Shown one piece after another: positions 12,906 to 64,000 of a stretch of DNA of 64,000 nt. Position numbers and translations under genes: made by a program. Position 1 is the first letter of the stretch. Each line of letters begins with the position of its first letter. The stretch is from positions 186,001 to 250,000 of the forward strand of contig NIVC01001380.1 in assembly GCA_002269645.1 (NCBI GenBank), given 5' to 3'. This DNA comes from Macrostomum lignano (Eukaryota). The notes under the pieces were generated by a model. That model saw nothing but the letters and a program-made list of their open reading frames with translations, made no database searches and was not told the origin of the DNA.

Positions 12906-13375
12906 TGTATGTGATTTGGAATTCGATCCTTAGACTTAGATTTGATTTTCAAGACACAAGCTGGAGTTTTGTATTTTTTGTATTAGTTTTTTAGTTTTTT
13001 GTATTTAGTTTTTGTATTTTTGTAGTTTTTTGGAGTCACTGGCTGCTGCTTCAGCCAGTGATGAATGGTATTCTGCTCTTTTAAAAAAATTGAGACTGCA
13101 AAATTTGCTCGTAAACCAACGTATGCTCTCGTTGGGAATTTACAGAAGTCAAATATAGCAGCTGAAGCAAAGAGCTTTTCCAGGAAATGTACGAACTCTT
13201 AATTTCCCGAATGCTCTTTTTGAATAAAAATGACTTTTCTTCTGCACAGTTGAATCTGCATGGAGAGCAGCTTCAGCTTCGGGACTTTGATGTTGGACTC
13301 CTCATCCCAAGCTTGAGAGGCTCCTTTAATCCCATTTTAGCTAAATCAAAAAGATAGACACTTAACTAACTACAT

Positions 13376-14594
<1,219 letters not shown>

Positions 14595-14612
14595 ATTTAA
14601 TTAACCACTCAC

Positions 14613-15050
14613 TCATCTCTCCCAGTCTCCTCAGCAGTGGGCTGCATCAGCGGTGATGGCGGAGGCGGCGGTGTGGAAGGCGGCGGCAAGGTGAGGCTGC
14701 CGCTGCTACCCCGTCGCCCCTGGGTGCCAAGAAAAGTCTGCAGCAGGGCGCCAGATTTCCTTGGCTGACAGCCGCCATTCAGAAGCAGCCGCCGTTGCAG
14801 ACTCTCGTCATCAAACTGGCCTCCATCGTCCAGCCTCACCAGTTTGAGTTTATTCTCAGACTCGTCGCAGCTGCAGCCGCTGCCGCTGGATTCCGACCGG
14901 CTGTCGCGGCGTCTCTCGCCCGGCTTCAATCGATTCCTTTGATGTTGCCGCCGCTCGTCCGGCTGGTTGGCCCGGGAGCTCAGATCTTGCTGGCGTCGTC
15001 GCCGGTTTAGCAGAAGCAGAAGACCGAGGAACAGCAGCAGCAGCAGCAAC
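14613..15050 (-). CDS. Kirrel/Neph-like gene, 3' half of TM/juxtamembrane exon (split by LINE)
   Basis: LLLLLLFLGLLLLLNRRRRQQD.. (end of TM plus basic stop-transfer); donor GA|GTGAGT at 14613/14612. Confidence 0.85.
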
Positions 15051-18000
15051 CGATCAGCCCCATAGGGTTGGTGCACCTTCTGGTGCGGTCAAAGGAGCTG
15101 CCTCATCGCGGCGACCCGGTTTTAACACCAAAGCTCCTAAGTCGTGGTCTTCAACCCATCTGCCCTCGCGTGCCTTCGGCACGGCTGGCAGGGAGACCGG
15201 TTGTTTTGCTGCTGTCTATCTGTCCCGCCTCGTCCTCTTTGCGCTCGCCCTCACTACGCTCGCCGGGGACATCGAAACTAATCCCGGCCCAGCCTGCAAC
15301 TCATGCAACGGCCCAATCCGCACGGGCATGCACAGCCTGCCATGTGAGGTCCCAGAATGTTCCGAGCGCTGTCACTGTCAGAAGAAATGCAGCGGTATGC
15401 ACCGCGCCGAGATTGTCCGATCTCCGTGGCGCTGCTCTGTGCACCGCCCCCTTGAATTGGACTCGGCATCCGCTGCGCACCTGCGTGACCTCCCGGCACC
15501 CGAGCCCCGCATGTCTCAGCCAACGCGCTGTCACAGCTGCTCAGGGCCCATCCGCACTGGCACTACTCCGCTCACTTGCGCTGCCAAAGGTTGCGCTCTG
15601 GCCTGCCACCGCTCCAGCAACTGCAGCCACATCTCGCGGTATCGTGGCGCCCCCAGCTGGCTCTGCCCTCTGCATCGGCAGCAGGCGGTCCAACTTCCAG
15701 GCGCACACTCCATCTTCCGCCGCCCTGCTCTTACCCGCAGACAAGCTGATCCCACTACCGACAGAGATCTGAACGATCCAAGCGACGCCCAGCGCCGCTA
15801 TTGTGCTAAATGCTCGACCGCCATTCGCCGCGGCGTCGCGTTTGTCAAGTGCAACTCCTGCAGCGCCGCTTACCACAAGTGCTGCACCGGCCTTAATCGC
15901 AACGCCGCGGATGCCGCGGCTCGCAGCCCTTGGGACTGCCCAGTTTGCACAGCGCGCACCCAAGGAGCTCCCGCCCCTTCGGCAGCTACGTCGCGCGTCC
16001 CCCTGCAGGACAAGGTCGCCCGCGACACTAAATTTGCCGACAGCCTCCGTCTTCTCCAGTGGAACGCCGACGGAATCGCCTCCAAACTGCCCGAGCTGGC
16101 CGAACGCCTCTCCGACAGCGATATCGACATTGCAGCTGTCCAAGAAACGAAGCTCTCCAACCGCACGCAGCTGCCAAAGATCAACGGGTACATCGCCGTG
16201 CGCAAAGACCGCGGCGACGGCAGCGGTGGAGGTCTGCTGCTTCTCATCAGAGACAAGCTGGCCTTCCGCTCGTCCCCGCAACCCACGGCCACAGCGGACA
16301 TGGAAATCCAGACGGTCGACATCCAGATATCTACCGCTAACTGGATTACCATCACCAACGTCTATGCTCCACCTGTCCGCACCTGCGTCGAGGATCGACA
16401 GCTTCCGGACTGGAATCACCTGGGCACTCCGTCTCAGGGCATCATCCTAGGAGACTTCAACAGCCACTCTCCGGCCTGGGACCCTATACAGCCCCAGGAC
16501 GAACGAGGCTCCACGCTCCTGGACTGGTCCATCGACACGCAACTGGAAATCCTTAACGACGGCTCGCCCACCAGAGTCAATAAAGCCACAGGTGGCGAAA
16601 GCTCACCGGATGTGTCCTTCGCCTCCTCAAAGCTGGCTAGCAAATGCACCTGGCAAGTCTCCGATGACCTCGGCAGTGATCACACGCCGATTGTGATCCG
16701 CCTTGACCTCAAGGTTAGGACCTTGCCTAAGGCCCAAAGCCGTCTCATATGGCGCAAACAAGGGGTCGACTGGAATGCTTTCCAAACGGTCGTCGAGGAC
16801 AAATTTAAAGCCCTTCACAAAGAGCATCTTACCTTTGACGCCAGAGCCAAACGCTTTAATGATATAGTCATGCAAGCGGCAAACCTTTGCATCGGCAAAG
16901 TCCGTACCTCGCACAGACCGCGTCCCTGGCTCACCCCTGAACTCAAAGCGGCGATTAAGCTCCGTAACCGCCTCAGGCGCTCCGTTGGCGAGAATAGAGA
17001 AGATTGGCTCAGCGCCTGCGCCAACGTTCACAAAATTGCCAGGGCAACGAAAGAGGCTGCTTGGCGTGACACGATAACCGATCTTGAGAAAGAGCCCAAC
17101 TCGAACAAGGCGTGGAAGTTCATCCGCAGCCTTAACGGCACTCCGGACTCCAACTGCCCTAATGAGGCCCTCCAGGTCGGCAACAAAGTGTTAACAGACC
17201 CTAGAGACAAAGCCAACGCCTTTGCCAAGCAGTACGCCTCTGTCAGCAGGTACCACATTTCCCATTCGGATCGCGCTACTATCCGAGAAGCCAAAGCCAT
17301 CCTTCGGCTTCCCCTTCCGCTCCCAGGTTCGACCCACGACGGTTACGCCGCCATCACCGAGCAGGAACTGGACTCCGCCATCCAACACCAGCGTGCTAAC
17401 GGCGCTGCTGGCGCCGACGAGGTCACGCCTCGGTTCATTAAGGCCCTTGGCCCGCTCGCCCGCGCAGAGCTGCTTAGTCTCTTCAACTGGTCCTTCCAGC
17501 ACGCGGCCGTCGCTCAATCCTGGCGCACCGCGATTATTATTCCCCTGCTCAAGGCTGGAAAGTCAGCTCGGGACATCGCGGCCTTTCGCCCCATCAGCCT
17601 CACATCCTGTATTGTCAAGCTGCTCGAGCGCATCCTGGTCACTAGATTGCACCACCTGGCTGAGCGCCACGGCTGGATCTCCCCGAACCAGGCGGGGTTT
17701 CGGGCCAACTACTCCTGCGAGGATCAGCTCCTGAGAGTCACCCAAGACATCAGCGACGGGATGAACCTCAAACCATCTGAACGCACGATCATTGCTCTGC
17801 TTGATTTTTGTAAAGCCTTTGACAAAGTGTGGCGTGAGCGCCTCATCACCGTTATGGCACGCAAACGCGTCCCTCTTGTCTTTATCAAATGGACTGCGGC
17901 CTTTTTGCGCCATCGCATTGCCCGCGTGCAACTCCACGGTGCTCGCAGCTCACCGGTTATCATGCGCCAGGGCCTCCCGCAAGGATCGGTCATCGCTCCG

Positions 18001-19756
18001 TTTCTCTTCCTTATTTTCATTGACACGGTCAATGACGTGGTCAACCCGCCGGCAGAGATCTCCATGTATGCCGACGACATCGCCCTCCGCGCCCGCCACC
18101 GCAACAAGCTCGAGGCTCAACGCGCTGTGCAAAGAGCACTCGACAACGTGGCCCGCTGGAGCAATGAGCACAAAATGGTCCTAAACCCAGACAAAAGCGA
18201 GGCCGCCTTTTTCTCCACGGACACCAGCGAAGCCGCCTGGTCCCCGGCTATCTCTATCGAAGGCCGGAACCTGCGGCACAATCCAACGCCTCGGCTGCTG
18301 GGCCTCACACTGGACCGCACTCTGAGTTTCCGCAGTCATCTGGAGCACGTGTGCAATCGGACCACTTCCCGATGCCGTCTCCTCGCTTGCCTGGCCTCCA
18401 AGGAATGGGGATGGTCCAAAAAACTCCTGCTCCGCATTTACCGTGCCATGCAACTTAGCATCATTAACTTCGCTGCGCCGGCCTGGCACCCTTGGCTCTC
18501 TGAATCCGCGTTTCAACAGCTGGAGAGAGCGCAGAACGCAGCCCTTCGTATTGTCACAGGACAACACCGCACGACTCCGGTTGAGGCCCTTAGGCTGGAA
18601 GCTGGCATCTGCTCCGTCCGCACTGGTAGCAATGTTATATGCCTGACGGCCTTCGAAAGAGCTCAGCGCCTCCCGGATTCTCACCCGTGCCGCATTGCCG
18701 CCACTGGAAACACAGCACACAGGCTACGCAGGAACAGTTGGCGGAACCACGTCACCGACCTGCTGCCACTCATTGCTAGCTCGGTCACGCCGCGCGCCAT
18801 GATCTGCACTGCTCGTCCGCCGCCTTGGGACCCTTTCTCTACCGACGTGCGTGTCGACATGGCGTTGCCGGAACCCGGTCCCGCGCGCACAGCCACGGCC
18901 ATCGACACTATCCGCCACCTCCCAGGCCTGATCACCATCTACTGCGACGGCTCGGCATCAGGCGGCACGACCAATGGCGGCGCCTCAGCCATCGTCACGA
19001 CCGGTGACCCAGCCCACCCTATCATCCTGGCGACTCTTCAACAGCGCGGCGCGCCCTCCACATCCTCGTTCGAAGAGGAGCTTCGCGCCGCCTCTCTCGC
19101 CATCGGCTGGATCAACCAAGCTGCTCTCACCGCGGCTACCAACATCTGCTCAGACAGCCAATCTATGCTCCGCGCTCTGGCCAGCGGCAACCCCAGAATC
19201 AGATCTGCACTACCTACTGCATCTGCCGAAATCACCTGGCAGTGGGTTCCGGGCCACCAGAATATTCCTGGCAACGAGCTGGCCGACCAAGCAGCCAAAG
19301 AGGCCACCACGCTCGTGTCTCCCGCTAGTCAGATCAGCATCCACAGCGCCAAAAACGTCATCAGAAGATCCGTCCTCGATCCCCCGATCCGCCACGAGCG
19401 CACCCGGCACGCGTACCGGCTTCTCAACCGTCAATTGGAAGAGGACTCCATCACCAACCGTGCCGATGCGGTGCTTCTTGCGCGCTTACGCTCAGGTCAC
19501 TGCACTCTTTTCAACGCGTATCGCAGCATTGTCGACCCGGCCGTCGACCCAGCATGTCACCGCTGCGGCCATCCCTGCGATGACCTGGAACACTGGCTTG
19601 ACTGCCCAGCTCTCGCCGGCACCAGGCTCCGCCTTCTTGGAGGACCCACGACAGACATCAGCAGCATTTCCGCCGACCCCCTCGGGTTGATAGCGCTGGC
19701 CAGACACTGCCCTTAGCTCTGCCTGGGCGCGTACCACCAAAACAACAACAACAACA
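15051..19756 (+). mobile_element. Intact non-LTR retrotransposon, Ingi/I-group-like (2A - PHD x3 - APE - RT - RNase H - zinc knuckle)
   Basis: 12-bp TSD AGCAGCAGCAAC (15039-15050 and 19757-19768); (AAC)n tail at 19738-19756; one uninterrupted ORF. Confidence 0.95.
15052..19716 (+). CDS. LINE polyprotein: 2A-like peptide, PHD fingers, AP endonuclease, reverse transcriptase, RNase H
   Basis: Frame is open from 15052 (first in-frame ATG 15328). Motifs: GDIETNPGP; APE LQWNADG..VQETK..GDFNSH..SDHTPI; RT QAGFR..LDFCKAFD..GLPQGSVIAP..YADD; RNase H YCDGS..EEEL..SDSQS..WVPGHQNIPGNELAD; C-terminal CHRC..H..C. Confidence 0.95.
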   Translation, partial: DQPHRVGAPSGAVKGAASSRRPGFNTKAPKSWSSTHLPSRAFGTAGRETGCFAAVYLSRLVLFALALTTLAGDIETNPGPACNSCNGPIRTGMHSLPCEVPECSERCHCQKKCSGMHRAEIVRSPWRCSVHRPLELDSASAAHLRDLPAPEPRMSQPTRCHSCSGPIRTGTTPLTCAAKGCALACHRSSNCSHISRYRGAPSWLCPLHRQQAVQLPGAHSIFRRPALTRRQADPTTDRDLNDPSDAQRRYCAKCSTAIRRGVAFVKCNSCSAAYHKCCTGLNRNAADAAARSPWDCPVCTARTQGAPAPSAATSRVPLQDKVARDTKFADSLRLLQWNADGIASKLPELAERLSDSDIDIAAVQETKLSNRTQLPKINGYIAVRKDRGDGSGGGLLLLIRDKLAFRSSPQPTATADMEIQTVDIQISTANWITITNVYAPPVRTCVEDRQLPDWNHLGTPSQGIILGDFNSHSPAWDPIQPQDERGSTLLDWSIDTQLEILNDGSPTRVNKATGGESSPDVSFASSKLASKCTWQVSDDLGSDHTPIVIRLDLKVRTLPKAQSRLIWRKQGVDWNAFQTVVEDKFKALHKEHLTFDARAKRFNDIVMQAANLCIGKVRTSHRPRPWLTPELKAAIKLRNRLRRSVGENREDWLSACANVHKIARATKEAAWRDTITDLEKEPNSNKAWKFIRSLNGTPDSNCPNEALQVGNKVLTDPRDKANAFAKQYASVSRYHISHSDRATIREAKAILRLPLPLPGSTHDGYAAITEQELDSAIQHQRANGAAGADEVTPRFIKALGPLARAELLSLFNWSFQHAAVAQSWRTAIIIPLLKAGKSARDIAAFRPISLTSCIVKLLERILVTRLHHLAERHGWISPNQAGFRANYSCEDQLLRVTQDISDGMNLKPSERTIIALLDFCKAFDKVWRERLITVMARKRVPLVFIKWTAAFLRHRIARVQLHGARSSPVIMRQGLPQGSVIAPFLFLIFIDTVNDVVNPPAEISMYADDIALRARHRNKLEAQRAVQRALDNVARWSNEHKMVLNPDKSEAAFFSTDTSEAAWSPAISIEGRNLRHNPTPRLLGLTLDRTLSFRSHLEHVCNRTTSRCRLLACLASKEWGWSKKLLLRIYRAMQLSIINFAAPAWHPWLSESAFQQLERAQNAALRIVTGQHRTTPVEALRLEAGICSVRTGSNVICLTAFERAQRLPDSHPCRIAATGNTAHRLRRNSWRNHVTDLLPLIASSVTPRAMICTARPPPWDPFSTDVRVDMALPEPGPARTATAIDTIRHLPGLITIYCDGSASGGTTNGGASAIVTTGDPAHPIILATLQQRGAPSTSSFEEELRAASLAIGWINQAALTAATNICSDSQSMLRALASGNPRIRSALPTASAEITWQWVPGHQNIPGNELADQAAKEATTLVSPASQISIHSAKNVIRRSVLDPPIRHERTRHAYRLLNRQLEEDSITNRADAVLLARLRSGHCTLFNAYRSIVDPAVDPACHRCGHPCDDLEHWLDCPALAGTRLRLLGGPTTDISSISADPLGLIALARHCP

Positions 19757-19826
19757 AGCAGCAGCAACAGCAGAGCCGCCCCGGCTGCGGCCCCGGCGGC
19801 GGCTACGGCTACCGACGGCAGATCGG
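19757..19826 (-). CDS. Kirrel/Neph-like gene, 5' half of TM exon (split by LINE)
   Basis: Acceptor GTCTCCCTTCTTCAG|, phase 1 matching the donor at 20442. Reads PDLPSVAVAAAGAAAGAALLLLL. An alternative same-phase acceptor lies ~30 nt upstream. Confidence 0.8.
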
Positions 19827-19882
19827 CTGAAGAAGGGAGACGTTCGTTGCGTTCAACTGTTGATGATTTATTGCCGTGCGAG

Positions 19883-20321
19883 GGTGTACATGCCTGACCT
19901 GAGGTGTACATGCCTGACCTGAGGTTTACATGCCTGACCTGAGGTTTACATGCCTGACCTGAGGTGTACATGCCTGACCTGAGGTGTACATGCCTGACCT
20001 GAGGTGTACATGCCTGACCTGAGGTGTACATGCCTGACCTGAGGTGTACATGCCTGACCTGAGGTGTACATGCCTGACCTGAGGTGTACATGCCTGACCT
20101 GAGGTGTACATGCCTGACCTGAGGTGTACATGCCTGACCTGAGGTGTACATGCCTGACCTGAGGTGTACATGCCTGACCTGAGGTGTACATGCCTGACCT
20201 GAGGTGTACATGCCTGACCTGAGGTGTACATGCCTGACCTGAGGTGTACATGCCTGACCTGAGGTGTACATGCCTGACCTGAGGTGTACATGCCTGACCT
20301 GAGGTGTACATGCCTGACCTG
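19883..20321. repeat. 20-bp minisatellite (GTGTACATGCCTGACCTGAG, ~22 copies)
   Basis: Near-perfect tandem units inside a Kirrel-like intron. Confidence 0.97.
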
Positions 20322-20441
20322 ATTAGAAAGTATAATAACTACTAAGTAAGTTATTATGTTATGATTTTCTTCGGGAATTGCAACAAAATAAGTTCCGCGA
20401 AATTAAAAGTGCAAAAAAATGACTTGTATTTTTGTACTCAC

Positions 20442-20593
20442 GCTCAACGTTGAGGCTGATTGTGGCCGAATCGCTGCCCAGAGGGTTCACAGCAGTGCAG
20501 GTGTACTTTCCCGAGTCCTTCGGTGTGGGTCGGTCGATTTGCAGGTAGGCAGACACCGTGGTTAAGTCCAGGTCTTCTCGGTAGATTCGGATC
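20442..20593 (-). CDS. Kirrel/Neph-like gene exon, Ig5 C-terminal half
   Basis: CATTTCAG|G acceptor; AYLQIDRPTPKDSGKYTCTAVNPLGSDSATISLNVE (Ig D-x-G-x-Y-x-C motif); donor C|GTGAGT. Confidence 0.9.
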
Positions 20594-20625: not shown

Positions 20626-20950
20626 CTTGACCTTGTTTGACCCTAGATACTTGACCTTATTTGACCCCAGATACTTGACCTTGTTTGACCCTAGATACTT
20701 GACCTTATTTGACCCCAGATACTTGACCTTGTTTGACCCTAGATACTTGACCTTGGTTGACCCTAAATATTTGACCTTGTTTGACCCTAGATACTTGACT
20801 TTGTTTAACCCTAGATACTTGACCTCGTGTAACCCTAGATATTTGACCTTGGTTGACCCTAGATACTTGACCTTGTTTAACCCTAGATACTTGACCTCGT
20901 GTAACCCTAGATACTTGACCTTGGTTGACCCTAGATATTTGACCTTGGAA
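20626..20950. repeat. 24-bp minisatellite (TTGACCTTGTTTGACCCTAGATAC)
   Basis: Tandem units. Confidence 0.9.
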
Positions 20951-21033: not shown

Positions 21034-21663
21034 CTGGCAGTCTCCGTCACTCGACTGCCATCCTGCCGCCTCCATGTCACCCCGGGCTCGATTCCCACCG
21101 TCTCCGGCAAGGGCACCGCTTCGATTCGACACTCCAGACGAGCCGGCGCTGCCGAACCGCCTTCGCCGCCTTCAACTTCGACGCCCCTGATGACAACGCC
21201 GGCAGCTCTGGCGGCTACCCGCGGCACCGCCGACACCCTTGGCGGCCGGGTTCGCGCCACCAGAATTCTCCGACGAGCGGGTGCGAACCCCGGCGCCGCA
21301 GCGGTGCAAGTGTACTCGCCGAAGTCGCTAGGCCGAAGTCCGGTCAGTCGCAGAGTCGGCGAGCGCGAGACCCAGTCCAAACTGCTGCCGCGCCGCCAGA
21401 TGTAGTCAGGTCGCGGGTTCGAGTCCGCTTGGCAGGACGCTTCAACGGAGCCTCCAGGCGGGGCAGGGTAGAGCGGCCCACCCTGACCCGAGACGAACTT
21501 TGGCGGGTAGCGAACTCGGAGGCGGACTGGAGTGGCGTCGCCTCTGGCGAGGCTGTTCACGGCTGAGCAGCCCAGCAACTTGCCGTTGTGCCGGCGGCTC
21601 AGGATGAGGCGGAGACTGGACTGTTGGTGCACGGAGCTGGGGTCCAGGTCTTCCAGGTACCAG
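21034..21663 (-). CDS. Kirrel/Neph-like gene exon, Ig3 end - Ig4 - Ig5 start
   Basis: CCACCAG|C acceptor, phase 2; SWYL..HNGKLLGCSAVNSL..YPPKF..CQADSNPRPDYIW..SDFGEYTC..LECRIEAVP; donor AG|GTGAGA. Confidence 0.92.
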
Positions 21664-21682
21664 CTGGTGGTGGGTGGGGAGT

Positions 21683-21980
21683 GTTGAACTGAGTGTCCGA
21701 GAAGTGCTAAACAGAGTGTCCGAGAAGTGCTGAACTGAGTGTCCGAGAAGTGCTGAACTGAGCGTCCGAGAAGTGTTAAACTGAGTGTCTGAAAATAACT
21801 AAATTGGGTGTCCGAGAAGTGCTGAACTGAGTGGCCGAGATGTGTTGAACTGAGTGTCCGAGAAGTGCTAAACAGAGTGTCTGAAAATAACTAAATTGGG
21901 TGTCCGAGAAGTGCTGAACTGAGTGGCCGAGATGTGTTGAACTGAGTGTCCGAGAAGTGCTGAGCTGAGTGTCCGAGAAT
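21683..21980. repeat. ~23-bp minisatellite (TGCTGAACTGAGTGTCCGAGAAG)
   Basis: Tandem units starting ~20 nt from the acceptor at 21663. Confidence 0.85.
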
Positions 21981-22299: not shown

Positions 22300-23345
22300 T
22301 AACAAACTCTCTGTCTAACAGGTGACACTATCCACTGTCTAACAGGTGACACTATCCTCTGTCTAACAGGTCACACTAATCCTGTCTAACAGGTGACACT
22401 ATCCTCTGTCTAACAGGTGACACTATCCTCTGTCTAACAGGTGACACTATCCTCTGTCTAACAGGTGACACTATCCTCTGTCTAACAGGTGACACTCCTG
22501 TCTAACACGTGACACTATCCTCTGTCTAACAGGTGACACTATCCACTGTCTAACAGGTGACACTGTCCTCTGTCTAACAGGTGACACTATCCTTTCTAAT
22601 AGGTGACACTATCCTGTCTAATAGGTGACACTATCCTGTCTAATAGGTGACACTGTCCTCTGTCTAACAGGTGACACTATCCTTTCTAATAGGTGACACT
22701 ATCCTGTCTAACAGGTGACACTCCTGTCTAACACGTGACACTATCCTCTGTCTAACAGGTGACACTATCCACTGTCTAACAGGTGACACTATCCTCTGTC
22801 TAACAGGTGACACTATCCTGTCTAACAGGTGACACTATCCTCTGTCTAACAGGTGGCACTATGCTGTCTAACAGGTGACACTATCCTGTCTAATAGGTGA
22901 CACTATCCTGTCTAATAGGTGACACTGTCCTCTGTCTAACAGGTGACACTATCCTTTCTAATAGGTGACACTATCCTGTCTAACAGGTGACACTCCTGTC
23001 TAACACGTGACACTATCCTCTGTCTAACAGGTGACACTATCCACTGTCTAACAGGTGACACTATCCTCTGTCTAACAGGTGACACTGTCCTCTGTCTAAC
23101 AGGTGACACTATCCTTTCTAATAGGTGACACTATCCTGTCTAATAGGTGACACTATCCTGTCTAATAGGTGACACTATCCTGTCTAATAGGTGACACTGT
23201 CCTCTGTCTAACAGGTGACACTATCCTTTCTAATAGGTGACACTATCCTGTCTAACAGGTGACACTATCCTCTGTCTAACAGGTGACACTATCCTGTCTA
23301 ACAGGTGACACTATCCTCTGTCTAACAGGTGGCACTATGCTGTCA
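22300..23345 (+). repeat. 22-24-bp minisatellite (CTGTCTAACAGGTGACACTATCCT), inverted copy of 34943-37393
   Basis: Exact reverse complement of the AGGATAGTGTCACCTGTTAGACAG unit. Confidence 0.95.
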
Positions 23346-23824
23346 CATTTTCTGAATCAATTAATACTAAATACTACTTACCTAACATACCCGAACATAA
23401 AGTGCTACTGTATAATATGGTGGCGTATTTTTTGAATCGATTGATAAAATATTGCAATAGTGTGCCTTGTGCCTTAAGAAATTAATGAAAATCTCAATTC
23501 AATCGCACATTTTTTCGGCTTAGCAAATCGGGGTGGGTTGTTAAGCGCTCTCGCGTGACCCACTGGATGAAGCAATGAGAGGCTTCAAGGATTAATGAAT
23601 CTTGAGACATCACAGCTTTGACATATCCTCAATTCAATCCTGGCAATCGAGGTTCGGGATGGCGGTTTTTAATCTGAAGATTGACTGCTTCTGACTGGTT
23701 CTGTCCCAGATTTCACGGCTCTTCATCCTTTGTCGGTGGTGATAATTCAGAATTTTATTACAGAACTTGGATCTTTTTTGCCAGGCCGGGTTTTTTGCTT
23801 TGTTCTTCATCTGAGTTTATCTCT

Positions 23825-24945
23825 ATCAGTCTCTCCCTCTCAGTCTCTCCTTCTCAGTCTCTCCTTCTCAGTCTCTCCTTCTCAGTCTCTCCTTCTCAGT
23901 CTCTCCTTCTCAGTCTCTCCTTCTCAGTCTCCTTCTCAGTCTCTCCTTCTCAGTCTCTCCTTCTCAGTCTCTCCTTCTCAGTCTCTCCTTCTCAGTCTCT
24001 CCTTCTCAGTCTCCTTCTCAGTCTCTCCTTCTTAGTCTCTCCTTCTCAGTCTCTCCTTCTCAGTCTCCTTCTCAGTCTCTCCTTCTCAGTCTCTCCCTCT
24101 CAGTCTCTCCCTCTCAGTCTCTTCCTCTCAGTCTCTCCATCTCAGCCTCTCCCTCTCAGTCTCTCCCTCTCAGTCTCTTCCTCTCAGTCTCTCCATCTCA
24201 GTCTGTCCCTCTCTGTCTCTCCCTCTCAGTGTCCCCTCTCCGTCTCTCCCTCTCAGTCTCTCCCTCTCAGTCTCTTCCTCTCAGTCTCTCCATCTCAGTC
24301 TCTCCTTCTCAGTCTCTCCCTCTCAGTCTCTCCCTCTCAGTCTCTTCCTCTCAGTCTCTCCATCTCAGTCTCTCCCTCTCAGTCTCTCCCTCTCAGTCTC
24401 TTCCTCTCAGTCTCTTCCTCTCAGTCTCTCCATCTCAGCCTCTCCCTCTCAGTCTCTCCCTCTCAGTCTCTTCCTCTCAGTCACTCCATCTCAGTCTGTC
24501 CCTCTCTGTCTCTCCCTCTCAGTGTCCCCTCTTAGTCTCTCCCTCTCAGTGTCCCCTCTCCGTCTCTCCCTCTCAGTCTCTCCCTCTCAGTCTCTTCCTC
24601 TCAGTCTCTCCATCTCAGTCTCTCCTTCTCAGTCTCTCCCTCTCAGTCTCTCCCTCTCAGTCTCTTCCTCTCAGTCTCTCCATCTCAGTCTCTCCCTCTC
24701 AGTCTCTCCCTCTCAGTCTCTTCCTCTCAGTCTCTTCCTCTCAGTCTCTCCATCTCAGCCTCTCCCTCTCAGTCTCTCCCTCTCAGTCTCTTCCTCTCAG
24801 TCTCTTCCTCTCAGTCTGTCCCTCTCTGTCTCTCCCTCTCAGTGTCCCCTCTTAGTCTCTCCCTCTCAGTGTCCCCTCTCCGTCTCTCCCTCTTGGTCTC
24901 TCCCTCTCAGTGTCCCTCCTCTCAGTCTCTTCCTCTCAGTCTGCC
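23825..24945. repeat. Pyrimidine-rich ~14-bp minisatellite (TCTCTCCCTCTCAG)
   Basis: Tandem units with internal higher-order duplication. Confidence 0.92.
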
Positions 24946-25083
24946 CTCTAGGAGAAAGGGCGTTCTAAATCATTAAATGGCCTTCCTTTAAAAGTCACAG
25001 TTTTACACTGAAAAAAATTCACATCATACTACTTTCCGAGAAATTAAGTAGCAATCTAAGCAAATTCAAGGTTAAATCCGTAC

Positions 25084-25395
25084 CTGTAAGTGAAATTTTC
25101 CGGCCTTCCAGTGGCCAAGCACTCGGCCTCGATACGATCCTGCTCTTTGAACTCCTTCTCACCAGCATCCTGACCTTCAACCGACTGCGCTGTCGTTGCT
25201 AGGGACGCCCCTGGCAATGGTAGCCGACGCAGGCGCAGTCGAACAACCGGCGGTGAGCGAACGTACAGCCGAGTTGATGCGGTCAGCCCGCCATCTTCAA
25301 AGCCTTCAACGCGGGCATCGCAGGCGATCGGCAGGCCATGGTGCGACTCTGTGATGGCTCCGGCTGCCAGCTGCAGGTGGGCCCGCGCTGTCAGG
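25084..25395 (-). CDS. Kirrel/Neph-like gene exon, Ig2 end - Ig3 start
   Basis: CCTGCAG|C acceptor, phase 2; HHGLPIACDARV..LYVRSPPVVRL..IEAECLATGRPENFTY; donor AG|GTACGG. Confidence 0.9.
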
Positions 25396-25444
25396 CTGCA
25401 GGTGGGCATTGGAGCTGCTTATTGACTGCCGCTCTCAGTTCCAC

Positions 25445-26412
25445 GCCCTCCCGCTCTCTCCTGCTCTCTCCCGCTCTCTCCCGCTCTCTCCCGCTCTCTC
25501 CTGCTCGCTCCCGCTCTCTCCTGCTCTCTCCCACTCTCTCCCGCTCCCTCCCGCTCTCTTTAGCTCTCTCCCGCTCTCTCCCGCTCCCTCCCACTCTCTC
25601 CCGCTCCCTCCCGCTCTCTCCCGCTCTCTCCCGCTCTCTCCCGCTCTCTCCCGCTCTCTCCCGCTCTCTCCCGCTCCCTCCCGCTCCCTCCCGCTCTCTC
25701 CCGCTCCCTCCTGCTCTCTCCCGCTCCCTCCCGCTCTCTCCCGCTCTCTCCCGCTCTCTCCAGCTCTCTCCCGCTCCCTCCCGCTGTCTCCCGCTCCCTC
25801 CCGCTCTCTCCCGCTCTCTCCCGCTCTCTCCCGCTCTCTCCCGCTCTCTCCCGCTCTCTCCCACTCCCTCCTGCTCTCTCCCGCTCCCTCCTGCTCTCTC
25901 CCGCTCCCTCCCGCTCTCTCCCGCTCTCTCCCGCTCTCTCCAGCTCTCTCCCGCTCCCTCCCGCTGTCTCCCGCTCCCTCCCGCTCTCTCCCGCTCCCTC
26001 CCGCTCCCTCCCGCTCTCTCCCGCTCCCTCCTGCTCTCTCCCGCTCCCTCCCGCTCTCTCCCGCTCTCTCCCGCTCTCTCCAGCTCTCTCCCGCTCCCTC
26101 CCGCTGTCTCCCGCTCCCTCCCGCTCTCTCCCGCTCTCTCCCGCTCTCTCCCGCTCTCTCCCGCTCTCTCCCGCTCTCTCCCACTCCCTCCTGCTCTCTC
26201 CCGCTCCCTCCCGCTCTCTCCCGCTCTCTCCCGCTCTCTCCCGCTCTCTCCCACTCCCTCCCGCTCTCTCCCGCTCCCTTCCGCTCTCTCCCGCTCTCTC
26301 CCGCTCTCTCCCGCTCTCTCCCGCTCTCTCCCGCTCCCTCCCGCTCTCTCCCGCTCTCTCCCGCTCTCTCCCGCTCTCTCCCGCTCTCTCCCGCTCTCTC
26401 CCGCTCTCTCCC
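25445..26412. repeat. 10-bp minisatellite (CTCTCCCGCT)
   Basis: Fills the intron between exons 25395 and 26447. Confidence 0.95.
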
Positions 26413-26446
26413 TCTCCCATTGTCTCGATCAGCCGGCGGGACTCAC

Positions 26447-26855
26447 AGGTGGTCTGGCTCATTCTCACTGAGCTGGTCCATCACAGCCCACCCGTGCATG
26501 GGCTGGTCAAACACGGTCCGCACCTGAGGCACCTGGTACAACGGCACCCTGACTCGTTTATTAGAATCCACCGTCCAGAAAACTGTCGGAGCGGGATTCG
26601 AACCTCTGACCTCGCAGACTAGCAGCAGCCGCTCGCCAACGGAAGCCACCGCCCAGTCTGCCACAGGCTGCAACAGCAAATCCGCTTGAGTCGCCGTCCA
26701 GTTTCCTACAAACAGCCGGAGACTGTCGGCATTTTTCAATACGCGCAGATAAGCGATGCTGGACTTTACTGGCCGGTCCGATCCGGCAACCACTTGGCAA
26801 CCGTAGGAGCCTCTGTCGGACAGCTGTAGCTGAGAGATTGTCAGGTCGTGAATTC
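26447..26855 (-). CDS. Kirrel/Neph-like gene exon, Ig1 end - Ig2 start
   Basis: TTCGCAG|GA acceptor, phase 1; IHDLTISQLQLSDRGSYGCQV..LVCEVRGSNPAPTVFW; donor CT|GTGAGT. Confidence 0.92.
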
Positions 26856-26949
26856 CTGCGAATTAAGGGGTGAATACAACTGCAGGTCTATGCCTACTTG
26901 GGTGTCAAATTTGACGCCAGCAGCAAACATTTTATAAAATTTTGCGCCA

Positions 26950-27748
26950 TAAAAAATCGGCGCTACTTCAGAGAATCGGCGCCACCACAGAAAATCAGCG
27001 CCAACCCAGTAGATCGGCACCACCCGAGAAAATCAGGGCTCCCCTGAAAAATTGGCGCCACCCCAGAAGGTCGCCGCAACCCCAGAGTATTGGCGCCACC
27101 CTAGAAAATCTACGTCACCCCAGAGTATCGGCGCCACCCCAGAGAATCGGCGTCAACAACTTAGAAGATCGGCGCCACCCCAGAAAAACTGCGCCACCCC
27201 AGAATATCGGCGCCATCCCAGAGGATCGGCGCCACAACAGAGAATCGGCGCCACCTCAGAGAATCGGCGCCACAACAGAGAATCGGCGCCACCTCAGAGA
27301 ATCGGCGCCACAACAGAGAATCGGCGCCACAACAGAGAATCGGCGAAACAAAAGAGAATCGGCGCCACAACAGAGAATCGGCGCCACCTCAGAGAATCGG
27401 CGCCACAACAGAGAATCGGCGCCACCTCAGAGAATCGGCGCCACAACAGAGAATCGGCGCCACAACAGAGAATCGGCGCCACAACAGAGAATCGGCGAAA
27501 CAAAAGAGAATCGGCGCCAAAACAGAGAATCGGCGCCACAAAAGAGAATCGGCGCCACAACAGAGAATCGGCGCCACCCCATAGAATCGGCGCCACCCCA
27601 TAGAATCAGCGCTACCCCATAGAATCGGCGCCACCCCATAGAATCAGCGCTACCCCATAGAATCAGCGCTACCCCATAGAATCGGCGCCACCCCATAGAA
27701 TCAGCGCTACCCCAGAGAATCAGCGCTACCCCAGAGAATCGGCGCCCT
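26950..27748. repeat. 19-20-bp minisatellite (AGAGAATCGGCGCCACAAC)
   Basis: Tandem units with a GGCGCC core. Confidence 0.92.
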
Positions 27749-29237: not shown

Positions 29238-29457
29238 CTGAATGTGTCAGACTGGCAATGCTGAACCGGGGATCTCTAACAGTGTCGGACATGGAACTAG
29301 CGGCAATCATGAGGTTATCCCTGTGCCAATAAACCCGGACTGGCAATGCGGTTTGTCTCCAACCAGTCCGGCACGCTAACGTGACGGAGTCGCCAACTTT
29401 TCGGCTGACATCGGCGGGACCGCGCACAATCCGCATTGGGCCTCTGTGGCGGCGCAG
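29238..29457 (-). CDS. Kirrel/Neph/SYG-1-like gene exon, Ig1 N-terminal half (5' boundary approximate; signal-peptide exon not found)
   Basis: IVRGPADVSRKVGDSVTLACR..VYWHRDN..RFSI; donor CAG|GTGAGC joins in frame to 26855. Five Ig domains plus a TM and a cytoplasmic tail match the Kirrel/Neph/Roughest architecture. Confidence 0.85.
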
Positions 29458-30560: not shown

Positions 30561-31129
30561 AGGAAGAGAAATAGCTCGAGATTTAGACCAAAAGCAACAC
30601 AGTGAAGTTTTCCTCACCCTATAGGCACTGCATCTGACAAAACAAATATGAGAGCTAACATTGCACTGGCATTGAATGGGCAATTAATTGCAGCTTAAGC
30701 TTAGAGCTAAAAGTGCAAAACTCCTGCGAAACCGTCAGTCAGTCTCTCTCTCACTCTCAGTGCTGCAACTTGGGTGTTTGTTAAACAAACCGCCACACCC
30801 GAAGCTGATGCACTCTTTGCAACTGTAAGCCCCACCCCTGACAGTAACCAGCAAGATGATTAATGATGGTTGTAAAATCCAAATACTGAGATGGGAGATT
30901 TTAATGGAGCATTTTTATAGCGAAGTCGCAGATTTGTTTGTAAGACCTGGTTGGGTAAAGAATTTATCTTAAACGTTTTTGATACTTAGTTGAATGATTG
31001 CAGTGACATTTAATGTCAGTTAGCCATCAATCTATCTGTTCTTATTTAGTTCTTGCATGTATAAGCCTACCAGTAATTATGTCTCAATAAAAATATTAGA
31101 TTCTAAATTAGTTCCTTGAGTGCCAGCCT

Positions 31130-61010: not shown

Positions 61011-64000
61011 AAAACAACAACAACAGCAACAGAGTACGCTGTCAGTTCGCGAAAGCAGCGTCAGATGGCGCGCTTCGAAGCTTGGGCGCGAACAAAGGCC
61101 GCACCACCGGCAGAGTCCGGGGCGCCGGCGTCAGCCAGCAGACAGTCGACGTAGCGCCGAGTCCTCGCCTGTCCCCGCCGATAGGGTGCCTGCAACGTAA
61201 GTAGCAGCACCTCCTGCACCGGCTCCGGACAGTAGGCCTCGGCGCGGATGACGTAGCCTGCCAGCTGGAGTCACCGACGGCGCAGCAGATCGCTAGGACA
61301 GGCCAGGCCGGCGCGATGATAGAGCGCCGTGTTGGTGACTCGCTCGTTGCCGATCTTGAAGGCGGCGCGCAGCAGGCCAGCGTGCGCCGCGTCGACTTGA
61401 GCCTCGAGCGAGTCTGTCAGCGTCCAGGTCTCGGCGTTGTATAACAGGACGGTCTCGATCACCGCCTGGAACAGCGCCGCCCTCTGGCGGTCCGGTAGGG
61501 CCTCGGACTGCAGGACTGACCTTATAGAACGAAAGGCAGCCCAGGCAAGTCCTCGGCGACGCCGCAGATCCTCGCGGACGTCGGGAACCAGACCGCCCAG
61601 ATAGACGAACTGCTGACATCTTGGAAGCTCACTCGCCTGTCTGTCAGCGCCTCGGCAGAATATTGCAGCCTCGGTGTCGTCCGGCACGCATAGCACGACG
61701 GTCTTCTGCGTGTTGACCACCAGGCCGACGCTCGCCGCAACGGCAACCAGCCTATCCAGCTGTCGTTGGGCGCCCTCGACGGTCGAGGACAGCAGGGCGA
61801 GGTCATCGGCTTAGCCAAGCACGCTGAGCCGTCTCTCCGGTTGGCGTCGACCCACGCGTCGCCGCAGCAGGAAGCCGTCGTCGTTGGAAGGCAGAGCAGT
61901 CCGTAGCACCCAGTCAAGCACCAGAATAAATAGGAACGGCGCTAGCGTATCTCCCTGGAGCACCCCGGAGGATGTCTCGAAGAAATCCGATAGGCCGTCC
62001 GGTGTTGAGACAGCAGCCGTCGTGCCGTGGTACAGCGCCATGACAGCAGAAATCAGCAGCTCTGGCACGCTGTACGCACGGAGCACCTTCGGGAGCGCGT
62101 CCCTCACGACCGAGTCGAAGGCCTTCCTGAAATCGACGAAGATCAGGATCAGGGTCAACTGGCGGATGCGCGCCTCCTCGATGACTCGGCGAAGAGCCAG
62201 GATCTGCGTCACTGTGCCGCGATGGGGCCGGAATCCGTTCTGCTCAGGCCGCAGGTACGGGTCCAGCACAGGCTGTAACCGCGATAGCAGCATGCGGTTG
62301 AACAGCTTCGCGGCGCAGGACTGTAGGCAGATGCCTCGATGCTCCTCGAGCTTGGTGGTGCCCGGCTTCTTTGGAATGGCGACGATGTGCGCCGTGGTCC
62401 ATTCGTTTGGCGCCACCTCACCGGAAAGCACGCGGTTCATCACTCTGGCGACCTCAGTGGCCACACAGTGGATCCGCAGCGCCTCGATGGGCACCTCGTC
62501 CGGACCAAGCGCTTTGCCGCCCGGCGACTGCCGAGCGAACTTCACAACGTCGGCTGTGCTGACTGGGGCAACGTTGAAGCTCTCCTCCGCCGGCACGGCG
62601 TCTCCGGCGGCAGACTCAGATTTCTGGAAGCGGAGGGGGCGGCGCGTTGACAATGGCGGCGAAGAACTCGCGCAGCTCGTTCCTGCGTTCATCCGGAGTG
62701 TCGCCTGCCAGGTTGAGCGCGATGCGCCGCTTTCGCCCCGTCAGAGTGTTGATGATGGACCAGGCCACGCGCCCTCTGGCATCGGGCCCTGCGGCAGAGA
62801 CGGCTTGGATGGCGTCATCGACAGCGGACTGCTGCCGCTGCAGGTAGACAGCCGCCAGAGCCTCCTCCGCCTCGCGAGTTTGCCGCCCACTCTGACGGAG
62901 CCTCTCCAGATCTTCCCTCGCTTCGTCGATCGCGGCGTCGTCCTGCCAGACCGGCTGCCCGCGCTGGGCCGGTCGCATCAGCGGGACTGCTTGCTCCGCA
63001 GCGGCTCGAACTGCAGCGCTCACCTCCGCGTACTCGGCTCCTCCACGCTTGTCACCCAGCGCAGTGACAAAGGCACCGGCAAAGCGACGTCGCGTCTCGG
63101 CGTCTCTGAGCGCGCGGTAGTAGCGCCGCGGTGGCCGCTTTGGCGGACGGTAGAGCGGGTCCCGAAGCCGAAGGTCGCAGATGAGCAGCCGATGGTCGGA
63201 CCGCAGAGCCAGCGGCGTAATGGTGCGGCAGTTGGTGACGCGGCGGCGCTCACGAAAGCGCACAAGCACGTGGTCGAGCTGTGCCAGCCTCCGCGTAGCG
63301 TTCCGGCCGCGCGCGTTCCGCCGCCTCCGCTTGCAGCCCACGAAGGTCGCGAGCCTGCCCGGTGACTTGCGGAATCTGGTGTTGGCCGACACCATGTCCT
63401 GTCTCTCCAGGAAGTCCTCTAGCGCTCCGGTGTTGCCGTTCTCGCGCGCTGTCACGAACAGCGATCGCTCGGACCTACGCAGAACTGCGTTCAGGTCTCC
63501 GAGAATGACCACTGTGTCACGTTGCGCCATCTCCTCCACCCGCACCGAGAGTTGCTCGAAGATGGCCTGAGCCTCATCGGAGCGGGTAGCAGGCGGCGCG
63601 TACGCGCAGAACAGGCGGGCGTTCCGGCCGCGAAGCCGGACGTCGACCCGAAGCAGCCGAGAAGACAGGGAGACGCAGCGACAGCTCTGCTGCAGCCTCG
63701 GTCCGATCAGCGCTCCAACTCCTCCACGGCCTCGCTTATCCGCTGAGGTGTACCAGAGTGTCCAACCGGCGCCCAGGTCCTCACAGTGAAGTCCGGGGTC
63801 GGCTCTGATAGACACCTCCTGTAGTGCGATGACATCACAGCTGAGGTCGAGCGCTAGCCTCGCCAGCAGCCATCTCCGCCATGTGGCCTTGAGAGTGCGG
63901 CAGTTCAGCGTCCCGACTCGAAGCGTGCCCTCTGGTACGGCTGGGGCTCGGTGCTGGTGAGCCTCATGGTCCCCGGCGCCACCCGGAAGATCCAATTGGG
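61011..64000 (-). mobile_element. RTE-like non-LTR retrotransposon, decayed; 5' end beyond the window
   Basis: APE GTLNCRTL..ALQEV..GDLNA..QLDHVL..SDHRLL (62616-63995); RT EQNGFR..VDFRKAFDS..GVLQGDTLAPFLF (61811-62692); frameshift near 62620; YADD changed to *ADD at 61811; stop at 61271; short (GTT)n tail at 61011-61030. Confidence 0.92.

Follow-up and report, generated by a model that had tools for sequence, protein, structure and literature searches.

What becomes of a receptor gene when a retrotransposon inserts antisense into the codons of its transmembrane (TM) helix? The question is raised by a stretch of 64,000 nucleotides (the window) of the Macrostomum lignano genome (assembly GCA_002269645.1, contig NIVC01001380.1, positions 186,001 to 250,000), in which a long interspersed nuclear element (LINE) interrupts a Kirre/nephrin-like gene with five immunoglobulin (Ig) domains. 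The locus provides a clean and datable case of a LINE in a coding exon whose predicted product is a tail-swapped membrane protein rather than an obvious truncation. On the minus strand, the insertion allele ends in a chimeric terminal exon (19826..19492), whose first 69 nt belong to the host gene and whose remaining ~266 nt come from the 3′ end of the LINE in antisense. Its splice acceptor (...cttcttcag|) has its last base at 19827, and its phase (1) fits that of the upstream Ig5 exon, which runs up to ...AACGTTGAGC|gtgagt at 20442. The host part (19826..19758) encodes PDLPSVAVAAAGAAAGAALLLLL plus the first base of a CTT codon (19758..19756), a hybrid codon that bridges host and LINE. The LINE-antisense part (19757..19495) reads VVVVVLVVRAQAELR...SAVT, which gives the junction ...AAGAAAGAALLLLLL|VVVVVLVVRAQAELR... 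and the frame (P)DLPSVAVAAAGAAAGAALLLLLLVVVVVLVVRAQAELRAVSGQ...SAVT, or in its longer form (P)DLPSVAVAAAGAAAGAALLLLLLVVVVVLVVRAQAELRAVSGQRYQPEG...VEKSAVT. Five GTT (Val) codons at 19755..19741 are the antisense of the (AAC)5 of the LINE, and the host frame remains open through 88 LINE-derived codons, with 79 residues after LVV, up to a TGA stop (19494..19492) located 110 codons past the first full codon. An earlier note on this DNA had described this peptide, its frame, the GTT/Val run and the stop at 19492, all of which proved exact on re-reading of the minus strand. The 79-aa tail is the antisense of the region downstream of RNase H and had no Pfam match.

The inserted element is a full-length, young LINE that occupies 15051..19757 of the plus strand (4705-4707 bp, 60% GC). 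Its boundaries, uncertain by 1 nt at each end, were set by BLAST and alignment against four further copies of the same assembly (L001, L002, L003 and L007), which were reached via annotated LINE proteins. From its first ATG, the LINE carries an open reading frame (ORF) of 1462 aa (15328..19716, plus strand) with a Cys-rich/PHD-like region, an APE endonuclease (243-455), a reverse transcriptase (RT; 751-971), RNase H (1202-1326) and a C-terminal CCHC motif. The Pfam matches (Exo_endo_phos_2, 8e-18; RVT_1, 7e-31; RNase_H, 3e-12) are those of an APE-type LINE, and so are the target-site duplications (TSDs) of 9-16 bp at the five loci, the 3′ simple-repeat tail and the dispersal of the copies among unrelated flanks. 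The ORF differs from GenBank PAA62320.1 of M. lignano at 2 residues, and the window's own version was not found on record in a look-up. The five copies are 99.7-99.9% identical over ~4705 bp (0.13-0.28% apart) and form a star phylogeny in which each copy has 2-8 private changes (4 in 4705 bp for the window copy) and variants shared between copies are zero. This pattern points to a very recent burst of the family. All five copies end in ...CCACCAAA(AAC)5(AA), and the (AAC)5AA tail (19741..19757, plus strand) is identical in every one. Since they share one 3′ end, the (AAC)n tail is, judging by this alignment, a fixed and templated part of the LINE.

The structure of the gene before the insertion can be read from the window itself. 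The LINE is flanked by a 12-bp TSD, AGCAGCAGCAAC, with the 5′ copy at 15039..15050 and the 3′ copy at 19757..19768, the first A of the latter being shared with, or ambiguous against, the LINE tail. Beyond the 5′ end of the LINE lies the remainder of the native terminal exon (14609..15050, minus strand; ...LLLLLFLGLLLLLNRRRRQQDLSS...TGRDE), which encodes the second half of the TM segment and a cytoplasmic domain of 132 aa. This remainder (LLFLGLLLLLNRRRR... and the 132-aa tail) is intact and is now located 4.7 kb downstream of the host part. Deletion of the LINE together with one copy of the TSD restores one continuous frame of 331 codons with AALLLLLLLLFLGLLLLLNRRRR, which reads ...AAGAALLLLLLLLFLGLLLLLNRRRRQQDLSS...TGRDE* and ends at the native TGA (14611..14609, minus strand). 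The restored TM segment and its basic anchor align with AGASIALLMVLIFVLVLVCVCRRSRW of three M. lignano paralogs (P0079, P0108 and P0127), with F, L and R columns that are invariant. A misassembly at the insertion was rejected in view of the perfect 12-bp TSD and the frame-preserving empty site. No Pfam match or recognised domain was found in the native cytoplasmic tail, which is of low complexity. Because an ATTAAA, a candidate native polyadenylation signal in sequence terms (14596..14601, minus strand), directly follows the native stop, the TM exon is probably the last exon of the host gene. The ATTAAA sits at the edge of a (TAAC)n microsatellite (13363-14595; 1.2 kb, ~307 units, 93% matches) that begins less than 15 bp from the native stop.

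Is an open frame of this length, with a hydrophobic start, something that requires a special explanation? Past the junction, the host frame continues in the antisense frame that keeps codon register with the LINE ORF, and stops in this frame need TTA, CTA or TCA in the sense strand, which account for 15 of the 1463 codons of this 60%-GC ORF. The codon-register antisense frame contains 18 stops in 1569 codons, with a mean open run of 82 codons, a maximum of 301 and a first run from the tail of 87; in the second and third antisense frames the first run from the tail is 14 and 32 codons, respectively. The 87-codon run is thus average for its frame, and the open frame is not remarkable because it is the codon-register antisense of a GC-rich ORF that is poor in TTA, CTA and TCA. 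The hydrophobic continuation has an equally simple origin. Read in antisense, (AAC)5 encodes Val, Leu or Cys depending on the frame, so that a hydrophobic extension of the Leu run is expected in two of the three registers. The earlier note had proposed a TM prediction on the chimera as a check. By simple scales rather than a dedicated predictor, the chimeric segment AAGAALLLLLLVVVVVLVV passes, with a maximum 19-residue Kyte-Doolittle mean (KD19) of 3.31; the native helix reaches 3.09 and the helix of one paralog 3.24. The summed Hessa dG is −4.8 for the chimera and −6.3 for the native helix, and the flank carries a net charge of +2 (the next 15 residues) and +4, respectively. The segment combines a hydrophobic span of at least 19 residues with a net-positive flank, as in a single-pass type I anchor, and no second hydrophobic segment in the 79-aa tail reaches the threshold. 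By these scores the hybrid segment appears as hydrophobic as the native helix and would qualify as a TM helix.

The position of the insertion, in a run of eight CTG (Leu) codons, follows the preference of the LINE. The TSDs of the other copies are (CAG)5C at L001, (CAG)5 at L002, GCAGCAGCAGC at L003 and CTCAGCAGT at L007, and CAGCAG is present on the LINE-sense strand in five out of five TSDs. In ~110 kb of surrounding sequence, CAGCAG occurs on a given strand in just 0.46% of 12-bp windows, which puts the chance of five out of five at ~2e-12. The same target is therefore found in the same orientation throughout, in a small sample (n = 5). Since five near-identical copies are all located at CAGCAG, this motif is, on the evidence of the duplications, the integration target of the LINE, and the hit on the (CTG)8 Leu run was not a random one. 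The (CTG)8 run is a CAGCAG target on the opposite strand, and this sets the antisense orientation of the LINE. The alternative that the (CAG)n flanks are part of the LINE was rejected, as their length and interruptions vary per locus and the window flanks are colinear with the host exon. Several APE-type LINEs are known to target microsatellites, among them Waldo (ACAY)n, Mino (AC)n, Kibi (TC)n, Koshi (TTC)n and Dong (TAA)n (2013 review, PMC3812793). The LINE described here resembles them in having one simple-repeat target, one orientation and TSDs made of the target repeat, and in ending 3′ in a short simple repeat instead of poly(A). It differs from them in its target, CAGCAG/(CAG)n, which in this genome sample lies within open reading frames and not in ‘safe’ repeats of non-coding DNA, and in possessing RNase H and a 2A leader. 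Known microsatellite-specific lineages fall in the R1, Tx1 and R4 clades. No CAG-targeting LINE was found in the list of that review or in a non-exhaustive search of later literature, and the CAGCAG-targeting, 2A-led family is apparently new. Target-specific LINEs are thought to persist through harmless multicopy targets.

Taken together, these data show that a young, apparently autonomous APE-type LINE entered the (CTG)8 of the probable last exon by target-primed reverse transcription, landing antisense to the five-Ig gene with a 12-bp duplication. The insertion split the TM-coding sequence and left the cytoplasmic domain of 132 aa, together with the basic stop-transfer signal, 4.7 kb further downstream. 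The fixed (AAC)5 tail, read as GTT, and the stop-poor frame supply 88 more codons, made of a hydrophobic span and an unrelated 79-aa tail. If the host gene is transcribed, the polymerase may be expected to read into the LINE, and the mRNA would encode an intact ectodomain and a membrane anchor with no native cytoplasmic domain, that is, a tail-loss allele.

A precedent for this kind of read-through was found at another locus (L007:13193-23379, minus strand; contig NIVC01000001.1 of GCA_002269645.1), where a further copy of the LINE interrupts a Src-family-like tyrosine kinase gene. The coding sequence (CDS) of the gene spans 668 aa, includes SH3, SH2 and tyrosine-kinase domains, and has the equivalent LINE-antisense stop as its end coordinate. 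A seven-exon reconstruction matched exactly the 668 aa of PAA94767.1 (BOX15_Mlig028567g2; UniProt A0A267HB99, ‘Tyrosine-protein kinase’). The last exon reads ...ERPTFAHLAQYFEDFFPSTDSGYRATAE|VVVVVLVVRAQAELR...SAVT*, with the kinase junction at ...DSGYRATAE|VVVVVLVVRAQAELR, and the C-terminus of PAA94767.1 is thus the same 88-aa LINE-antisense peptide as that of the window chimera. In this gene the insertion duplicated and displaced the exon donor GAG|GTGAGT, just past the C-terminal ...DSGY. The possibility that this locus is the window itself was discarded, since the kinase motifs are absent from the window and BLAST shows a separate, fifth copy of the LINE. For the M. lignano annotation, stranded RNA-seq (StringTie --rf) was combined with a de novo transcriptome and with TransDecoder, and STAR mapping allowed up to 1000 multimaps (PMC5730564). 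Because a transcript-based model ends in the same peptide, read-through into the LINE antisense in this frame is plausible at the window by analogy. The kinase model also bears on a different outcome, in which the LINE would be removed as a new intron, from the donor GTG|GTACGC (19735/19734) to the acceptor ...caccag|AAG (15080/15079), so that the native tail would be regained with an insert in frame (...VVVVVLV-KVHQPYGADR-LLLLLFLG...). The two sites share phase 0 and preserve the native frame, and a GTACGG donor is already in use elsewhere in the host gene (25083); but both sites are weak, the product would contain a charged loop within the TM region, and the equivalent donor is unused in the kinase model, whose CDS continues to the antisense stop. 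Such splicing is extremely improbable.

More serious is the possibility that the insertion allele is a functional null, the mRNA being lost by nonsense-mediated decay (NMD) triggered by a long 3′ untranslated region (UTR), by pairing with sense LINE RNA into double-stranded RNA or by PIWI-interacting RNAs (piRNAs), or the locus being heterochromatinised, so that no chimeric protein accumulates. The earlier note had asked whether polyadenylation might occur within the LINE; at sequence level, no AATAAA was found on the minus strand from 19826 to 14854. With transcripts ending at the native poly(A) site, the 3′ UTR behind the stop at 19492 would measure ~4.9 kb. The LINE ORFs on record and a fusion model in sense orientation indicate that the family is active and transcribed at least in part. 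M. lignano has a PIWI/piRNA pathway for transposon silencing (PMC4604429). The host gene, moreover, is absent from public protein sets. Against a null stands the survival of the chimeric kinase CDS into a transcript-based annotation, from which it appears that such RNAs are not fully eliminated. The chimeric stop, in addition, lies in the last exon, and a stop codon in the last exon escapes NMD that depends on the exon-junction complex, a rule that is well established in general and not specifically for flatworms. Complete loss of function is a real possibility, on balance a doubtful one.

The host gene itself supports the view that the insertion hit a receptor, as the earlier note had proposed: the Pfam matches of the encoded protein are Ig_3, I-set, ig and C2-set_2, and the protein from the six host exons is colinear with M. 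lignano paralogs across five Ig domains and the TM segment. Upstream of the chimeric exon, and all on the minus strand, are exons for the second half of Ig5 (20442..20593; ...KDSGKYTCTAVNPLGSDSATISLNVE, ending ...CTCAACGTTGAGC|gtgagt), for the end of Ig3, Ig4 and the first half of Ig5 (21034..21663), for the end of Ig2 and the start of Ig3 (25084..25395), for the end of Ig1 (V-set, ...LSDRGSYGCQV) and Ig2 (26447..26855), and for the first half of Ig1 (29238..29443). Their borders are GT-AG throughout, their phases are compatible, and each of the six exons is open. In an exhaustive HMMER search, a one-exon query matched three M. lignano proteins colinearly over long stretches (47-53% identity), and their UniProt names are Nephrin, KIRREL1, Ig-like or Dscam2. 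Over its whole length, the host reconstruction is 39-40% identical to the paralogs P0079, P0108 and P0127, from Ig1-Ig5 through the TM segment. The sole match outside Macrostomum in a word-index search was a tapeworm hypothetical protein (26% identity). A homolog query made of Ig4, Ig5, the TM segment and the tail matched nothing, a result that is uninformative, low-complexity words (poly-L, P, R) probably having saturated the candidates. Like the Kirre, IrreC-roughest and Kirrel-nephrin receptors of the Ig superfamily, the host protein has five Ig domains, a single TM segment and a cytoplasmic tail; its assignment to this group follows the names of its M. lignano paralogs.

Could this gene have been a dead or unexpressed duplicate before the LINE arrived, so that the chimeric ORF is without biological consequence? 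No annotated product of the host gene was found in the protein collection by word-index searches and exact look-up, nor was the predicted chimeric Ig protein of 678 aa (ATG at 29436) by exact look-up. The DV1 assembly contains 180 Mb of duplicated non-repetitive blocks (PMC5730564), and the introns of the gene are packed with minisatellites. These observations would suit a decayed copy, but the six exons are all open with canonical GT-AG borders, and the conserved Ig Cys/Trp and TM residues align with those of the paralogs. Also, the GenBank annotation deliberately dropped transcripts that overlap repeats (PMC5730564), and therefore the absence of an annotated host product is weak evidence. 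A gene that was already dead or unexpressed is rather unlikely.

The chimera at the window is likely to be a by-product of a recent, target-directed insertion, a tail-loss allele that is neutral or mildly harmful rather than a new exon favoured by selection. Several points weigh against this reading. No product of the host Ig gene, with or without a LINE tail, is annotated in the searched collection, so that the gene may be unexpressed or decaying. An uninterrupted second copy of the host gene was not found, which makes buffering by redundancy an assumption. Decay or small-RNA silencing could plausibly be set off by the 4.9-kb 3′ UTR and by 4.7 kb of active-LINE antisense, and either would lead to a null. 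The CAGCAG specificity comes from five copies only. Finally, the kinase model could be inflated by multi-mapping LINE reads, an extension of the exon still needing unique-junction coverage.

The earlier note had gone further and proposed that the allele could encode a membrane-anchored receptor with a swapped tail acting as a decoy or dominant-negative, a possible snapshot of exonisation of a transposable element (TE). As a prediction, the tail-swapped, membrane-anchored product stands at sequence level (antisense LINE in the TM exon, 88 open codons, TM scores), but the idea that it was shaped by selection does not. The insertion is too young, with its 4 private changes and the star phylogeny of the family, and therefore selection cannot have shaped the chimera. 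Retention by selection, as TE exonisation in the sense of an evolved new exon would imply, is not seen in an insertion with 4 private changes in a family 0.13-0.28% apart and with a frame explained by composition; the open frame and the hydrophobic start are expected from this composition and the fixed tail. In favour of a stable surface receptor with a decoy or dominant-negative role, as an early adaptive exonisation, the hybrid TM segment passes on hydropathy and has a positive inside flank, the ectodomain exons are intact, and the same peptide is already part of the annotated protein PAA94767.1. Yet conservation is impossible in an insertion that is essentially new, the tail is antisense sequence from downstream of RNase H with no Pfam match, and the open frame is expected by composition. 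This adaptive outcome is very improbable, and a decoy or dominant-negative role of the chimera is speculation. The tail-loss allele resulting from a recent insertion resembles antisense TE exonisation and gene-breaking in that a TE in antisense becomes the 3′ end of a host CDS and replaces the native C-terminus. Antisense Alu exons and L1-truncated transcripts are mammalian examples of such gene-breaking. The window locus differs from these in that the insertion is directly in a coding exon, without recruitment of a splice site, and very young, and in that transcript support is found at the kinase locus only.

The CAGCAG-targeting, 2A-led LINE family is a more interesting result than the chimeric exon. 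The leader of the LINE (15051-15327) is open from the first nucleotide, and a canonical 2A motif, LAGDIETNPGP (FALALTTLAGDIETNPGP; 15259..15291, plus strand), is located ~70 codons from the 5′ end. No in-frame ATG exists between the 5′ end and this motif, and in four of the five copies the CAG codons at the flank share the frame of the LINE ORF, the window copy being 1 nt shorter at the 5′ junction. The motif has the form GD(V/I)ExNPGP, lies in the N-terminal part with a hydrophobic upstream context, as in 2A-bearing LINEs, and is also kept in distant relatives (P0003, P0005 and P0007; ~36-41% identity). Single-ORF LINEs with 2A are known from L1Tc/Ingi and from some CR1, Crack, L2 and Rex1 elements (Odon et al. 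2013, PMC3708506). The LINE described here likewise has GD(V/I)ExNPGP at the N-terminus, then a Cys-rich/PHD-like region and then APE, in a single ORF and with no separate ORF1; it differs in lacking an ATG ahead of the predicted 2A and in the flanking CAG codons in frame in most copies. At L003:3001-7944, GenBank PAA57949.1 (1647 aa, partial) is a polyQ-containing frame fused in frame to the LINE ORF (...QQQQQQLQQQ|PDQPHRVG...), the sense-orientation counterpart of the antisense chimeras. These features suggest that the LINE may be translated by host read-in from polyQ exons, with release by 2A.

A broader interpretation is offered tentatively, namely that the LINE might represent an undescribed lineage that homes to CAG/CTG runs in coding exons and is built to live there. 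Because there is no ATG before 2A and the frame is open with the flanking CAG, a sense insertion in a polyQ exon could, though this is far from assured, be transcribed and translated by host read-in, with the predicted 2A shedding the host N-terminus. It is conceivable as well, with as little confidence, that antisense insertions would give in-frame hydrophobic C-terminal extensions by way of the triplet tail and the stop-poor antisense frame, as at the window and in the Src-like kinase, so that hits would tend to make fusions and not simple nulls. The CAGCAG targeting, the 2A leader and the lack of a start codon upstream of 2A suggest a testable route by which a retrotransposon might borrow host transcription and translation, and M. 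lignano is tractable by transgenesis. A young, active family that homes to CAGCAG would preferentially strike coding tracts of polyQ, polyL, polyA and polyS. Users of M. lignano annotations should know that such C-termini derive from TEs; the public record PAA94767.1 already carries one.

Several further observations concern the LINE and its relatives. The L001 copy (L001:9724-14430) sits in a (CAG)5 run within an open frame that carries CCHC zinc knuckles (CHKCQRFGH..., CANCGEAH...) and is probably a gag-like ORF of another retroelement. The relatives found beyond the M. lignano copies are unnamed metagenome ORFs, and distant relatives (about 36-41% identity) have 3′ ends of (AC)n or (AC)n(AAC)n. 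Full-length relatives (~37-41% identity) with 2A, Cys-rich, APE, RT and RNase H regions were found in three ENA metagenome contigs of ~5 kb (L004, L005 and L006), including one from a beach-sand metagenome, and by their 3′ ends these contigs are eukaryotic, probably meiofaunal, DNA within metagenomes. An Rfam search of the LINE 5′ end gave no credible match to a hepatitis delta virus-like ribozyme or any other family; processing from a co-transcript by a ribozyme was thus set aside as the cause of the precise 5′ ends. At 61658-62455 on the minus strand, in a region of 66% GC, there is an RT-like segment with 27% identity to the RT of the LINE (tblastn 1.7e-15), which belongs to a different, older retroelement.

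Other observations concern the host gene. A tentative signal-peptide exon, MLALIFVLSDAVPI (30618..30661, minus strand), weakly indicated by a heuristic scan only, sits 1.2 kb upstream of the Ig1 exon, and its phase-2 donor (AGG|gtgagg) is phase-compatible. The Ig2/Ig3 linker in exon 25084-25395 (minus strand) carries a 17-residue insertion, ASLATTAQSVEGQDAGE, relative to the paralogs, which is either real or a small unrecognised intron. Each intron of the Ig gene is packed with a different minisatellite (20-, 24-, 23/92- and 24/68-bp units, and longer CT-rich arrays), located at 19883-20322, 20626-20947, 21680-21980, 22311-22994, 23681-24968, 25338-26527 and 26942-27696, and some of these arrays are strongly strand-skewed (GC skew to −0.56).

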